A stretch of 32,000 bases of DNA, taken from positions 510,244-542,243 of the forward strand of contig NW_008806274.1 of assembly GCF_000400465.1 (NCBI RefSeq). The letters are read 5' to 3'. The position numbers and the translations under genes were made by a program. The DNA is from Wallemia ichthyophaga EXF-994. Taxonomy: Eukaryota > Fungi > Basidiomycota. The notes under the pieces are model-generated. The model made no database searches and was not told the DNA's origin. It saw only the letters and a program-made list of their open reading frames with translations. Below are positions 3,057 through 13,369 of this stretch, piece after piece (the first letter of the stretch is position 1; each line of letters begins with the position of its first letter).

Positions 3057-5104
3057 ATGTCAGAGAAATTAACGAGAATTGCACTGGTCAATAACGACAA
3101 GTGTAAACCAAAGTGCGTTTAATGGCTGCTCTGTGTTGCATCATCTCACAGCTTACAGGAAATGTCGTCAAGTGGGTAATCCCAACCAAGAAGACACAAA
3201 TCTAACGAATAAACAAAGGAATGCAAAAGAGCTTGTCCTGTTGTTAAAATGGGTAAGATAGCTTTGTTATCGTATCCCAATCCAGCTCACGCCCATTCCA
3301 GGCAAACTTTGTATCGAAGTTGCTCCATCTGACAAGGTATTTCGATTTTGAACAAATACCTGCAACCAGCTCATGTTTCTACGTAGGTAGCGTTTATTTC
3401 GGAAACTCTCTGTATCGGTTGTGGTCTCTGCGCTAAGAAATGCCCATTCGAAGCAATCAACATTGTCAACCTTCCTACAAACCTCGAGTCCCAAGTCAGC
3501 CACAGATACACCGCCAACTCCTTTAAGCTCCACAGACTTCCCACTCCAAGAGCTGGTCAGGTTCTCGGTATGGTCGGTCAGAATGGTACTGGTAAATCTA
3601 CCGCTTTGAAAATTTTGGCTGGTAAGCAGAAGCCTAATCTCGGTAAATACGACGATCCTCCTGAGTGGACTGAAATCTTGAAACACTACCGTGGCTCTGA
3701 ATTGCAAAACTACTTTTTAAAGATCCTCGAAGACAACCTCAAAGCCATCATCAAGCCTCAATACGTCGATCACATACCTAGAGCCATTAAAGTTCCAATC
3801 ACGGTTGAGAAAATGTTGGATAGTAAGATGGAAATGGGCAACAAGGACCTCATCATGGATCTTCTGCAATTGAGGGTTATCAAGGACCGTGAAATCAACC
3901 AACTCTCCGGTGGTGAGCTCCAGCGATTCGCTATCGCTATGTCATGCGCTCAGAAGGCAGATGTGTATATGTTTGATGAACCATCCTCATATTTGGATAT
4001 CAAACAGCGTCTCAATGCCGCAAAGGTTATCAGAAGTCTCGCGGAAGACCAGGTATACGTTATTGCAGTAGAGCACGATCTGTCTGTTTTGGATTATCTG
4101 TCTGACTTTGTTTGCTGTATGTACGGCATGCCTGCAGCTTACGGTGTCGTCACCATGCCGTTTTCGAGCAGAGAGGGTCTTAACATCTATCTCGATGGTT
4201 TCCTTCCTACTGAAAATATGAGATTCAGACAGGAGTCTCTCAACTTCAAGATCGCAGACGCGGCAGATGATCTTACACTCGATAAGACATCTTCAGTTCC
4301 ATACCCAGCCATGACCAAGACGATGGGCGGGTTCAAGCTCAATGTCAAGGCTGGTGAGTTTACAGATTCGGAGGTGATAGTGATGCTTGGAGAGAACGGT
4401 ACGGGTAAGACAACACTCGTTAGAATGTTGGCTGGTGCCACTAAGGCGGACAATGAAGCAGATCAGCCTGAGCTCAAGGTTTCTATGAAGCCACAAAAGA
4501 TAACACCAAAGTTCCAAGGTACGGTGAGAATGTTGCTGTTGAAGCAGATCAAGGGAGCATTCATGCATCCACAATTCCAGACTGATGTGGTTAGACCAAT
4601 GCAGTTGGATGCCATCATTGACCAGGATGTGCAAACATTGTCTGGTGGTGAGTTACAGAGGGTTGCTATTGTCTTGGCACTTGGTAAACCAGCGTCTGTT
4701 TACTTGCTCGATGAGCCATCATCCTTTTTGGACTCTGAACAGAGAATTAGCGCATCAAGGGTAATTAAGAGGTTCATTTTACATGCAAAGAAGACTGCGT
4801 TTATCGTTGAACACGATTTCATTATGGCTACGTACCTGTCCGATAGAGTTATAGTGTTTGATGGTGAACCGGCAGTCGAAGCAACTGCAAACGCCCCACA
4901 GAGTTTGCTCACTGGGATGAACAAATTCTTGGAGTCGCTCCAGGTTACGTTCAGAAGAGACACGACCAACTATAGACCTAGGGTGAACAAGACTGATTCA
5001 CTCAAAGATAAAGAGCAGAAGTGTGAGTCGGCGGCGGCTTTGTGTGACAAATATACTAACGGTAAAACACAGCGACTGGAAACTTTTTCTTTGTTGGTGA
5101 TTAG
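3057..5104 (+). CDS. RLI1: ABCE1/Rli1 Fe-S ABC ATPase (ribosome recycling)
   Basis: Introns 3113-3158, 3172-3218, 3253-3301, 3337-3386, 5023-5072. Splicing restores [27 protein letters not shown] and [13 protein letters not shown]; two Walker A motifs ([16 protein letters not shown]) and two LSGGELQR signatures; spliced end [14 protein letters not shown]. Confidence 0.97.
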
Positions 5105-9594: not shown

Positions 9595-9618
9595 ATATCT
9601 ACATATCTACATATCTAT
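9595..9618. repeat. Three tandem ATATCTA(C/T) octamers between the RRP4 and DPH1 stops
   Basis: ATATCTAC-ATATCTAC-ATATCTAT read directly; the third copy contains the DPH1 stop codon. Confidence 0.8.
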
Positions 9619-11244
9619 ATAGCAGCGACTGCTTGGGCGACTTGATTGGGATTCGGTGTGTTGTTGGTGCTTCTGTTGGTGCTCCTCTCAACACTCTCAT
9701 TTGCACGCGCTGCCGGTGTTCTGCGAGGCCGTCTAGGAGGCATCAATCCATAGCGCGGTGTCCAAGGACCTCTGCTATCATTTGCGTAGAAATCCATCGG
9801 ATAGTCTCTCTCACCGTCGACATCTCTATCCCAACCCTGCGTCCGCTCCAGCGTCACAGCTGCTTCATAAGGCGAAAGAAGTGGTTTCGGGAAAGCGTAT
9901 CCCCAGTCTATAGATAAACGCGGACACGACGTCTGCACAAATGTCGAAAGCTCATCACCGAACAGAGATACCTTCTGCGGCGACAGCTCTGATATCAGTA
10001 TCGGCACGTACTCTATCCCACCGCGCGTTTCAATCAGATTCGCTATCGTCTCCAATACCTTCAGACTCCCCTGTCTACCTAACGTGCCGAGCACTACACC
10101 CCACGTGGCTGTGGATGCATTGTCGGCATGCTGTGCATCGCTGCCACCTTTCGCTAGTGCTACCGCATCTGATCGTATCATGCGCATCTCTGCATGGTCG
10201 TAGTGCTCCCGCGTGATCTTTTTGCTGTAGGGGTCGTACCGGAATGCAGGTACGGCCGGGTTTGCTATCATTATACTCTCGAGGTGGAAACGGCCATCGC
10301 CGATATAGAGCAGGGCGTCAACGGCGTCCAATTTAGGTGCCGTGCATCCGAGTACTTCTCCAGGAGATAGCGGACGGATTTGTGGAATGATGACTTCGTA
10401 GCTGTCCATGTGTATGTCGCTTTGTTGGGAGTCGAAGGGTGTTTGAGCACTACCGGTAGCAGTAGCAGCCTCAGTTTTACCATCTTCATAGCCCCCCTCG
10501 ATCAGTCCTGCTGGCTTGGATTGGGGTGTCTCCTGACGCAGGTCCTTGCGCAGATCGAGTGCTAATCCTTGCAACGCACCGACGAACTGTACTGTGCCCA
10601 CGAGCGCCAATTTCGTCTTTTTGGGTGGAGCATTCTCCAATTCAACACTTTGATATCTCTCTGTATCAGAATGGAGGAGAGTGTTTTCAAATTGCTGGGC
10701 GTTGGTAGGGAAGTTCTTCCTTATCGTCTTTGCCAGGTGGGTAGAATCGACACTGATTTCGACAAAGACGTAGAGCGTTTTGATGGAAGTTTGGTTAATG
10801 GGTACGAGGCAGCTGTGTCCGTAGTGTACGAGCATATCGCAGCCGAGAGCTCTGGCAGTGAAATCGTCGACGCAGCAAGCGCCGTAAGTGACATCACCGA
10901 GGATTATAACTTGAGCGCTAGTGAATCTGTGGGAAGTGTCAGTGTTGCTTTCGACGCCACCAACAAGCCACAAACTTCTCGAGGAGATCAGAGATGGTAC
11001 AAGCGAACATCTGTAAACCTTCTGGAAATTGTAGGCCAACAACAGTTGCGTTCTCTTTGCGTATCCAGTGAATAGTTTTGTGGATTTCAAATGAGTAATT
11101 ATCTGGGAGCAGTGCCATGGCAATATTCAACTGCGTATCATTTAGTATTTCATCTGGTATTCCATTCTGTGCGGCTGCTGGTTGGCTTGATGGCGCTTTC
11201 GTGCTGCCTACGAACTTCCTCCGCGGTTTCTTATCTTCGGTCAT
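9615..11244 (-). CDS. DPH1: Diphthamide synthesis Fe-S subunit 1
   Basis: ATG 11244 (MTEDKKPRRKFVG); intron 10975-10927 (GTTTGT..CTGAC..CAG). LPDNYSFEIHKT, LQFPEGLQMFA, LGDVTYGACCVDD, HYGHSCL, GEVLGCTAP, GDGRFHLES, ACPRLSIDWG-like TSCPRLSIDWG, YPMDFYA. Confidence 0.96.
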
Positions 11245-11359
11245 CGACGTACGGGAGAGAGAGGGAAATAAGCAATCCATACTTAATAATTACAACGCTT
11301 TTTTGTATATTGGGCTACCGTACAGATTGCAGGCTGTTAAATCGAATCCTCATTCTCAG

Positions 11360-12601
11360 ATTCGTGAGGGTACCTGTGACCGGTGTGCAAGAGGACGATC
11401 TAGGTTCTTGATTGCCATATTGCCAGTCGCCGTTGAAGCATGCTATGTCAAAATGGATGTTGCTAAGGCTTTACAAAGAGATGTGCTTCATTCCCAGTGG
11501 ATGCTCACAGGATAATCTTATGTCAGTGAGCTTCACGTCCGCCCGAGAACTACCAGCTAGCCCGATATGTGCGTGGCGCAAAATCTGGATGCTTCGGATG
11601 TGTCGCGTAAGTCTATTTGTGAACAAATGAAACTTTTGTCAGTCAGCCCGCAAGTTGAGATGTTCTTGGTTGCTGAATTTGATCAAGATTAATGAAATGC
11701 TAAGATTACATTCAAAAGCCACGAAGATATTCACTTATCCTTGAGCCCGAGTTCAATGGCTGAAGTTAATAATATGGTTTTTTCACCAAACAATGGCTTA
11801 AGCCTTCAATTTTACCCGGCTTGCCAAGGAGACCACAACGTCTTCCGAAGCCGAAGCCACTTAAGCCGGAAAATCTTCATCCAACCAAAAGTACCCAAAG
11901 GAATCACCTCACATTCAGGAAAAAGGTTAGTTCTAGAATACAGATACCAGTGAGCAGCTGGAAGAGCTATACTCAACCCTAGACTCTTGAACCTTACTGC
12001 CAGAAAGAAGATTGCTACGCGATCACAAAAAGCAAAGTCAAGAAAAGCTCATATCTGTATCATCAATACAGCTGATTTCGAAAAGAAAAAGTTCAGTTTG
12101 GGTAAATTCATCAGAATGGCATGGTCAGGCCGTAAGGTGAGATGTCGCAATTCCCATATCTCACAGGGTTGAGAGAAATTTTAATCAGGAAAGCTGTCTA
12201 CGGAAAGGGTTTAATTCCAGCAACAAATACAAATCAGCCACCCGTACATTCATCACTTGGCTCCCCACCTGGTTCACCCCACATAAACAACGCCGAGTTG
12301 CCGACAAAGGCGCGGGATGCAGTGAGCAAACTGCAATTCCAATACTATAAATAATTCTAATAAATATCATTGTAACAGAAATGTTGGTGGTAATCGTCAA
12401 TGCCACGCTTGCTATAATTATCAGAGGACGCATAACACTCAAATATCGGTACATCTGCAACAGGCTTTAGCAGAAACGATCGAAGGCCTGGGTATACAGT
12501 GTGCAAACTGCACTAACACTACTACAAATCATTGGTACAGAACTATTAGTGGTCATATTAGCTTAAAAAACATATTTAATTGCATTAACCAACTAATGTA
12601 A
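11360..12601 (+). pseudogene. Decayed multi-GATA-type zinc-finger gene (relic); 5' boundary uncertain
   Basis: A frame with no start codon is open 12326-12601 and reads (GMQ*)ANCNSNTINNSNKYHCNRNVGGNRQCHACYNYQRTHN...GLGIQCANCTNTTTNHWYRTISGH. The first Cys is TGA (12323-25), there is a 1-nt deletion near 12316, and the last finger lacks its distal CxxC. Weaker Cys fragments lie upstream in different frames (CDRC..EACY about 11375-11445, GCFGC about 11590, CQKEDC 11998-12015). Confidence 0.55.
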
Positions 12602-12876
12602 CCTATATCAGCAGTGAAATAGTGAGTTGATATCTATATCTAAATCTACATCTACGTCATCATATTTACAAGATACTGTTGGCAGCTCTTTGCCATACAC
12701 TCCTTCGATTCTGCTAAACCAGCAATAAACACCTTTTGCATTTTAAATCATCAAAAGTTTCTACTTATTCCTTGCACTTTCTCCTTCATCATAGAAATCG
12801 AGTTAGTTTGAGAATTTAGCTGTCACATCAAACTTCGTTTATTTGACATACCCTTCTACATCATTGGGACCCAATA

Positions 12877-13369
12877 ATGAAAGATGTCGTCGATTACGAT
12901 AGAGGCAGACGCTCTGATGCCGTCAAATACGCTCAAAGCCTTCAAATTTGGCACGGTACTATTGGAATGATTAAGTACACTTGTTACGGTAGCATTCTCG
13001 TTTATCTCGCAAATATGCGCTTCCCATGGGTGCAAAAACAAACGCTCGCTGGCAAGGCTTTCGTTGTTAGCTCTTTCTCTATCTTTGGGTGCGTTTTGCG
13101 TTTTTCACATGACACAATCGATAACACGACTCGATTCCTCACTCAGTCTTGTCGTATCCGCTGATAGCCACCTATTGTCCCATGAGAGGCAGCAGGGCTC
13201 CGTTGAGAATGAAGTCAGGCGGCGCGCTCTAGAAGATCTTAGCGCTAATCACGGCATCGTTGCCAGTGAGGGTCAGATTAGGCGCTGGGTGATGAAAAAG
13301 AAAGCAGAGGCCGAGGCCGAATCGAAAGAGGAATCTAATGTACTGTATAATGTACCTTCTACACAATAA
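12877..13369 (+). CDS. Small two-TM membrane protein, possibly HIG1/Rcf3-like mitochondrial (family uncertain)
   Basis: Intron 13089-13146 (GTGCGT..CTCAC..CAG) joins two ORF-track pieces in frame: WHGTIGMIKYTCYGSILVYLANMRFPWVQKQTLAGKAFVVSSFSIFG|LVVSADSHLLSHERQQ... Confidence 0.75.

Follow-up and report, generated by a model that had tools for sequence, protein, structure and literature searches.

Zinc fingers of GATA class IV (Pfam PF00320) carry four cysteine ligands spaced C-X2-C-X17-20-C-X2-C in one uninterrupted frame, and the animal factors GATA-1 to GATA-6 join two complete fingers through a linker of about 29 residues. Pseudogenes in compact fungal genomes are recognised by fixed disabling lesions together with neutral evolution, and some of them also by an identifiable parent. 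Here we analyse a locus of the salt-loving basidiomycete Wallemia ichthyophaga EXF-994 that touches on all three, namely the space between the start codons of DPH1 and of a small conserved membrane-protein gene in a 32,000-nucleotide (nt) stretch of contig NW_008806274.1 (hereafter the window). An earlier note, written from the letters alone, had described tandem GATA-like units in this space as a multi-finger regulator that arose by internal duplication and was kept as a pseudogene in a genome with otherwise squeezed spacers. Our results suggest that the locus is probably the relic of a dead GATA-type gene, with one finger and a partial copy of it, which drifts neutrally inside a lineage-specific insert. 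A literature search found no report on the locus 11245-12876.

The DPH1 start codon (ATG, minus strand) lies at 11242-11244 and that of the small gene at 12877-12879, and neither of two annotated assemblies places a gene model in the gap between them. The remaining annotated spacers at the locus measure 6-206 bp, so that the squeezed spacing noted earlier is borne out. In Wallemia mellicola (locus L001, 9984-10000) the two start codons are 14 nt apart, in the lineage L005 (9570-9586; Logan SRR25399871 contig 4201) 17 nt, and on a metagenome scaffold (L008) about 98 nt. The DPH1 open reading frame (9615-11123, minus strand) matches W. ichthyophaga with 99% identity; among the relatives, L005 is the closest with 90% identity, versus 82% and 71% for the other two lineages. 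The gap is specific to the W. ichthyophaga lineage. Since the 14-nt and 17-nt spacers have their ends in common, the tight arrangement appears to be ancestral, and because the flanking start codons of the relatives are only 14-98 nt apart, the 1.6 kb was in all likelihood gained on the W. ichthyophaga branch by insertion and not, as had been supposed, kept. An ancestral gene that survived as a pseudogene in W. ichthyophaga and was lost by clean deletion in the other lineages would also account for a gene-sized gap with a relic frame, the more so as compact genomes are quick to delete dead DNA. This history, however, needs at least two independent deletions, each leaving the start codons 14-17 nt apart with homologous ends and one of them in the closest relative; it is less parsimonious than a single gain, and we consider it improbable.

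As determined by nucleotide and tblastx comparisons, the gap has no similarity to the loci of the relatives, and within the rest of the window it matches nothing except its own internal repeat; it is therefore not a local duplicate of neighbouring genes. A search for terminal inverted repeats or target-site duplications yielded just one weak pair (19 nt, 79%). In W. mellicola and L005 the head-to-head arrangement means that the promoter and the 5′ untranslated region of each gene must sit within the coding sequence of the other, whereas in W. ichthyophaga the 14-17-nt arrangement has given way to a new upstream stretch of 1.6 kb for both genes.

The frame that holds the GATA-like units reads, from 12299, CRQRRGMQ-stop-ANCNSNTINNSNKYHCNRNVGGNRQCHACYNYQRTHNTQISVHLQQALAETIEGLGIQCANCTNTTTNHWYRTISGHISLKNIFNCINQLM-stop; 91 sense codons follow the TGA, and a start codon is absent. 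Unit 1 consists of stop-ANC-x22-CHAC and unit 2 of CANC...W.R...G, whose distal CxxC is absent from every downstream frame; the positions, the TGA, the match of 29 of 36 nt between the units, the x22 spacing and the missing distal pair are thus as originally described. Nowhere does one uninterrupted frame contain the four cysteine ligands of the family. The repeat search resolves the similarity of the units into two pieces, 12314-12356 versus 12491-12533 (79% over 43 nt, spacing 177) and 12352-12394 versus 12514-12556 (74%, spacing 162), which are offset from each other by a 15-nt indel. In blastn within the window the repeat reaches an E value of 8e-5, and its local alignment score of 29 compares with 8.0±1.5 (maximum 16) in 2000 shuffles. 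Both blastn and local alignments of the copies display a 1-nt gap at about 12316, where the earlier note had placed a deletion.

The similarity ends at 12394/12556, and the tails that follow are unalike (score 7.5 versus 8.5±1.4 in shuffles). Therefore only the N-terminal half of the unit and about 20 nt upstream of it appear to have been duplicated, and not the whole 59-codon unit: the internal duplication is genuine, yet shorter than proposed. As there is a single distal CxxC and only the N-terminal half is repeated, the alignments favour one finger plus a partial copy over a multi-finger regulator. The copies are 74-79% identical in nucleotides and only about 40% identical in amino acids, which argues that they have drifted neutrally since copying. 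The frame is also, as the earlier note had it, hit several times: it has a stop at the first ligand, a five-codon insertion in the loop and a Trp-to-Cys change in unit 1, a frameshift upstream, no start codon and a unit 2 devoid of its distal pair.

How strong is the resemblance to GATA fingers? Against the Pfam GATA profile, which has a gathering score of 26.8 bits, the 100-amino-acid frame attains 15.8 bits and unit 2 alone 19.2 bits (profile positions 1-22 of 36), while unit 1 gives no match unless its Trp is restored, and then just 15.8 bits. When the native frame was compared with all PDB sequences by phmmer, seven of the eight matches were GATA factors, the best being GATA-3 (24.6 bits, E 2.6e-4). 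With GATA-3, GATA-1 and GATA-4 the frame aligns over 57 ungapped residues, from the C-terminal half of unit 1 across a linker of 29 residues to the N-terminal half of unit 2. The GATA core residues (T..W.R...G; C-x-A-C..Y...H) are all found, but they are divided between units 1 and 2. We joined the N-terminal half of unit 2, CANCTNTTTNHWYR, to the C-terminal half of unit 1, NVGGNRQCHACYNYQRTHN, at the register of the DNA repeat. This composite finger matched 16 GATA chains in the PDB and no other chain below an E value of 0.5, with 35.7 bits for GATA-4 (E 6e-8), 32.4 bits for the GATA-3 C-finger domain (17 of 33 residues identical) and 22-23 bits for AreA.

Controls were scored against the GATA-3 DNA-binding domain. 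None of 20,000 composition-preserving shuffles equalled the native score (20.7 bits versus 13.9 for the best shuffle). When 2,922 real six-frame pieces of 100 amino acids, taken from the window and three related loci, were compared, this region alone scored (21.5, 15.1 and 14.0 bits), the next piece reaching 6.0. The GATA-like signature is thus statistically real in the controls, although it stays below the Pfam gathering score both natively and as a composite. Judged from these alignments, ancestry in the GATA family is sub-threshold for the native frame and clear for the composite, and we infer it with good though incomplete confidence, having allowed for the choice of family after the fact, the copied N-terminal halves and the selection of the composite.

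Independent support comes from the reading frame as a whole. Over the gap the GATA frame contains 15 stops, compared with 30.5±4.9 expected; none of 1000 dinucleotide shuffles had as few, and P is 0.001 for the minimum over six frames. Up to and including the terminal TAA, the stops of the relic frame lie at 11513, 11558, 11690, 11693, 11951, 12170, 12182, 12212, 12284, 12323 and 12599. The best frame-switching path on the plus strand needs 10 lesions versus 16.1±2.2 in controls (P about 0.01). That 12141-12316 is open in the neighbouring frame implies frameshifts in the relic frame, in agreement with the 1-nt indel described above. The codon-position composition leans, if weakly, as in the real genes nearby (G highest and T lowest at position 1; T highest at position 3), and the end of the frame at the TAA, 275 nt before the next gene, corresponds to a normal gene layout. 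The stop depletion in the GATA frame points to a gene-sized relic. Introns with strict signals were considered as a means of restoring the frame; the candidates leave the stops from 11513 to 11951 in place, and only the module at 12322-12378 works.

Several observations weigh against a GATA relic. Neither the native frame nor the composite attains the gathering score, the composite coming closest with 21.4 bits, and a blind Pfam scan of all six frames over the entire gap found no domain at E≤1, be it GATA, a transposase, a mitochondrial fragment or any other. The GATA family was chosen by eye and after the fact. The composite is a construct, its halves having been picked for likeness to GATA out of no more than four combinations, which would bias the result about 4-fold at most; and the two N-terminal halves are copies of each other and as such not independent evidence. 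Three-base periodicity in the gap reaches just p = 0.06, and the codon-usage log-odds profile carries no coding signal, albeit an uninformative measure, as real exons themselves yield no more than about 0.2 bit per codon. Stitched translations of 313 and 452 amino acids found nothing at E≤10 in 5.8 billion proteins, and an exhaustive HMMER search with the 91-amino-acid frame returned four matches, all of them summed weak hits to internally repetitive proteins and none a GATA protein; both searches are blind to finger-only similarity of 25-35 bits, whereas a full-length relative would have been caught. No parent or source of the inserted DNA was found in the protein searches or in the loci of the relatives, and a metagenome DNA scan for unit 1 gave no match. 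The earlier note had named the joint lack of a GATA profile match and of a homologous locus as fatal to its proposal; these searches found no homologous locus, and the matches to the profile stay below its gathering score.

On this basis the resemblance might be fortuitous: never-coding filler, taken up at a break, for example, or enlarged through local duplication, may have contained a frame rich in Cys, Asn and Thr that a 90-nt duplication then doubled. Besides the silent domain scan, the missing homologue and the absent codon-usage signal, such an origin would fit the activity of local duplication in this DNA, of which the 29-nt polymorphism described below is an instance. Several results speak against it, however. 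The composite matches GATA chains only; the region stands 15 bits over every other real six-frame piece and above all composition-matched shuffles; the stop depletion is independent of these scores and affects the GATA frame over the full length of the gap; and the C-terminal half (RN..G...C.AC..Y...HN) follows in the right register behind the N-terminal half. We regard a chance resemblance as unlikely, and the decayed GATA-type gene as the better account of the frame.

To what extent the frame is still in use can be judged from a second W. ichthyophaga lineage, which is represented by three Logan contigs (L009-L011; SRR25394091, SRR25393947 and SRR25394065), is 99.1% identical (0.9% divergent) and contains the same insert. 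Single-nucleotide polymorphisms (SNPs) are 2.7-fold denser in the gap than in the flanks (18/1633 versus 27/6626; Fisher p = 0.002), and those up to 12601 are spread evenly over the codon positions (6/5/5, counted by hand). All five SNPs within 12300-12601 are nonsynonymous in the GATA frame, including TGG to CGG (Trp to Arg) at 12533, where Trp is the ancestral state as judged by the paralogous copy. The TGA and the indel state are common to both lineages. The gap is free of constraint, its disabling lesions are fixed, and the DNA now very probably makes no protein and evolves at a roughly neutral rate. A tandem duplicate of a 29-nt unit, AAATCTACATCTACGTCATCATATTTACA (12642-12670), is present in L009-L011 (L009 about 3737-3794), whereas the window has a single unit.

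These polymorphisms also bear on a live small gene, which would start at ATG 12317 and use an in-frame intron of 57 nt (12322-12378) to remove the TGA. The spliced frame would run to the TAA at 12599 and encode a protein of 75 amino acids with CHAC-x29-CANC, which could bind one zinc ion; the signals GTGAGC, CTAAT and CAG are in place, and the length of the module is a multiple of three and typical of Wallemia introns. Yet the A of the branch point (12360) is C in the second lineage, and all three coding SNPs are nonsynonymous, Trp to Arg among them. Moreover, intron-like modules of this kind occur about 1.5 times per kb and strand by pattern alone, neither annotation calls a gene here, and no homologue was found. 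From the reading of these signals, a functional gene is highly improbable.

Nor are the lesions assembly errors, an alternative that the earlier note had left standing: they are the same in two GenBank assemblies, and the TGA and the indel state recur in the second lineage. Over 21 kb the window shows no difference from GCA_000400465.1, and for GCA_004917865.1 the difference amounts to 1 nt across 21.6 kb. A stop codon opposite a cysteine is the classic signature of a selenoprotein, and if TGA were read as selenocysteine or cysteine, unit 1 would be an intact finger. Recoding would nevertheless have to contend with the missing start codon, the upstream frameshift, the 22-residue loop and the Cys in place of Trp. 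Searches of Rfam (the window at gathering score, 11200-12900 at E≤1) found no selenocysteine insertion sequence and no other relevant family, nor did a tRNA search give a relevant match, and TGA terminates other long open reading frames in the window. Dikarya are not known to use selenocysteine, and we give recoding next to no credence. A telomerase RNA was also considered for the gap and rejected, because only a 7-nt telomere-like match was seen by eye and an essential RNA gene would not be lineage-specific here.

The extent of divergence permits a rough dating. The copies of the repeat have accumulated about 0.12 substitutions per site each, and the density of stops corresponds to about 0.10-0.17 substitutions per site from the death of the gene onwards. 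At 4-fold sites the difference from L005 is 51%, or about 0.43 per lineage after correction, and the split between the two W. ichthyophaga lineages corresponds to about 0.005. Rough as they are, the timings from copy divergence, stop density and the L005 split are self-consistent.

We propose the following course of events. After the split from the closest sampled relative, a gene-sized piece of 1,632 nt would have come to separate the DPH1 start codon from that of the small gene; it may have carried, or been a fragment of, a plus-strand GATA-type zinc-finger gene with the finger near its 3′ end. About 90 nt of the N-terminal half of the finger would then have been copied in frame, 177 nt downstream. 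Subsequently the older copy may have gained the TGA at its first Cys, the 15-nt insertion in the loop and the Trp-to-Cys change, while the newer copy would have retained CANC...W.R...G, its distal Cys pair having been lost or never there. The rest of the frame would have gathered about 6-10 stops and at least two frameshifts, and the insert may by now be mere enlarged intergenic or promoter space for both flanking genes. The features of the locus are compiled in Table 1.

Table 1. Coordinates, in the window, of the insert at the DPH1 locus and of the elements in the GATA-like frame.
Feature	Position	Strand	Remark
Lineage-specific stretch, 1,632 nt	11245..12876	.	Between divergent start codons of DPH1 and the conserved small membrane-protein gene
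Relic reading frame holding the GATA-like units	11246..12601	+	Codons start at coordinate mod 3 = 2
Repeat copy A, N-terminal half of unit 1	12301..12394	+	Reads (G)MQ-stop-ANC NSNTI NNSNKYHCNRNVGGN
Intron-like module GTGAGC ... CTAAT ... CAG, 57 nt, in frame	12322..12378	+	Part of the improbable live-gene model only
TGA at first zinc-ligand position	12323..12325	+	TGT in copy B; unchanged in L006, L007 and L009-L010
Extra 15 nt (5 codons) in copy A versus copy B	12335..12349	+	Loop of 17 becomes 22 residues; exact placement ambiguous
TGT (Cys) versus diagnostic TGG (Trp) of copy B	12371..12373	+	Register of second repeat piece, spacing 162 nt
Sole distal Cys pair and tail, CHACYNYQRTHN	12401..12439	+	Aligned to CNACGLYYKLHN of GATA C-fingers
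Repeat copy B, N-terminal half of unit 2, GLGIQCANCTNTTTNHWYRTISGH	12477..12556	+	CANC at 12500-12511; Pfam GATA 15.8-19.2 bits
TGG, diagnostic Trp of unit 2	12533..12535	+	CGG (Arg) in second W. ichthyophaga lineage
TAA closing the relic frame	12599-12601	+	Next gene 275 nt further on
29-nt unit, tandem duplicate in second lineage	12642..12670	.	Indel polymorphism, from lineage comparison

Some further features of the locus and its surroundings deserve mention. Unit 2 is flanked by a 14-nt inverted repeat that is 93% complementary (TTTAGCAGAAACGA at 12466-12479 and TCGATTCTGCTAAA at 12705-12718, 225 nt apart) and may be due to chance. Look-up of an open reading frame at 12142-12354 found no record. 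The small conserved gene (12877-13369) has an intron of 58 nt at 13090-13147 and a product of 144 amino acids. Its annotations conflict, as the locus from GCA_000400465.1 (L006 7876-8368) has the 144-amino-acid model with one intron and that from GCA_004917865.1 (L007 8013-8368) a model of 82 amino acids; tblastn conservation in three other lineages favours the former. The sole Pfam similarity of the small gene is a weak ENOD93 match (E 0.057). The two annotations also differ in an RLI1-type ABC/Fer4 gene, for which there is a model in GCA_000400465.1 (L006 16011-18274) and none in GCA_004917865.1 (L007 16141-18188), and they divide VPS15 differently. Public runs of one accession series (SRR2539xxxx) contain two unsampled Wallemia lineages, namely L005, whose 90% identity to W. 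ichthyophaga is that of the DPH1 protein, and L009-L011, whose 99.1% identity is that of the DNA.

For annotation, the 1.6-kb gene-free gap is best treated as a lineage-specific insert with a decayed GATA-like relic, and as neither a missed gene nor an assembly error. As the insert separates two head-to-head genes whose start codons otherwise lie within 14-17 nt of each other, both DPH1 and its neighbour must have gained new upstream sequence. For genome biology, the locus offers a small, datable case of gene-sized DNA that was gained and is decaying in a fungal genome of roughly 10 Mb with spacers of 6-200 bp. It reveals neither a new regulator nor a recoding event, and is in this respect an ordinary pseudogene.

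Compared with GATA class IV fingers, the composite shows the arrangement CANC-x17-CHAC, in which the distal pair is preceded by T-T-T..W.R-N..G and followed by Y...H-N. Unlike in those proteins, there is no intact finger, open reading frame or start codon in this DNA, and the frame, with 10 in-frame stops up to 12598 in addition to its frameshifts, is not an intact gene under purifying selection. Judged by the defining traits of ligands, curated threshold and gene integrity, the locus is no member of the family, but it makes a credible relic of it. The best matches are vertebrate C-fingers (GATA-2, GATA-3 and GATA-4; 33-36 bits), with fungal AreA at 22-23 bits, but as the PDB contains just one fungal structure, this ranking says little about origin.

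With the animal dual-finger factors GATA-1 to GATA-6 the locus shares one measure: between the distal pair of unit 1 and the proximal pair of unit 2 there are exactly 29 residues, as in their linker. The insert may accordingly be read as the remnant of an animal-type dual-finger gene, acquired by horizontal transfer or belonging to a lineage-restricted family that W. ichthyophaga alone has kept, in which case the 79% nucleotide identity of the N-terminal halves would stem from gene conversion between the fingers instead of late partial copying. In contrast to those factors, however, the second finger here amounts to 90 nt copied from the N-terminal half of the first and has no C-terminal half, and the linker sequence is dissimilar. 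Because only the N-terminal half was duplicated and the linkers are not alike, we take the spacing as an accident of where the copy landed; the equality with the animal factors is most simply a coincidence, and a dual-finger ancestor seems very unlikely.

Further close counterparts of this probable single finger with its partial copy are the pseudogenes and gene fragments of compact fungal genomes. It departs from them in that protein searches and the syntenic loci of relatives identify no parent or orthologue, and in that the relic lies within a lineage-specific gain which splits a head-to-head pair spaced by 14-17 nt. It resembles them in its multiple lesions, its neutral SNPs, a substitution rate above that of the flanks and a leftover depletion of stops in one frame.

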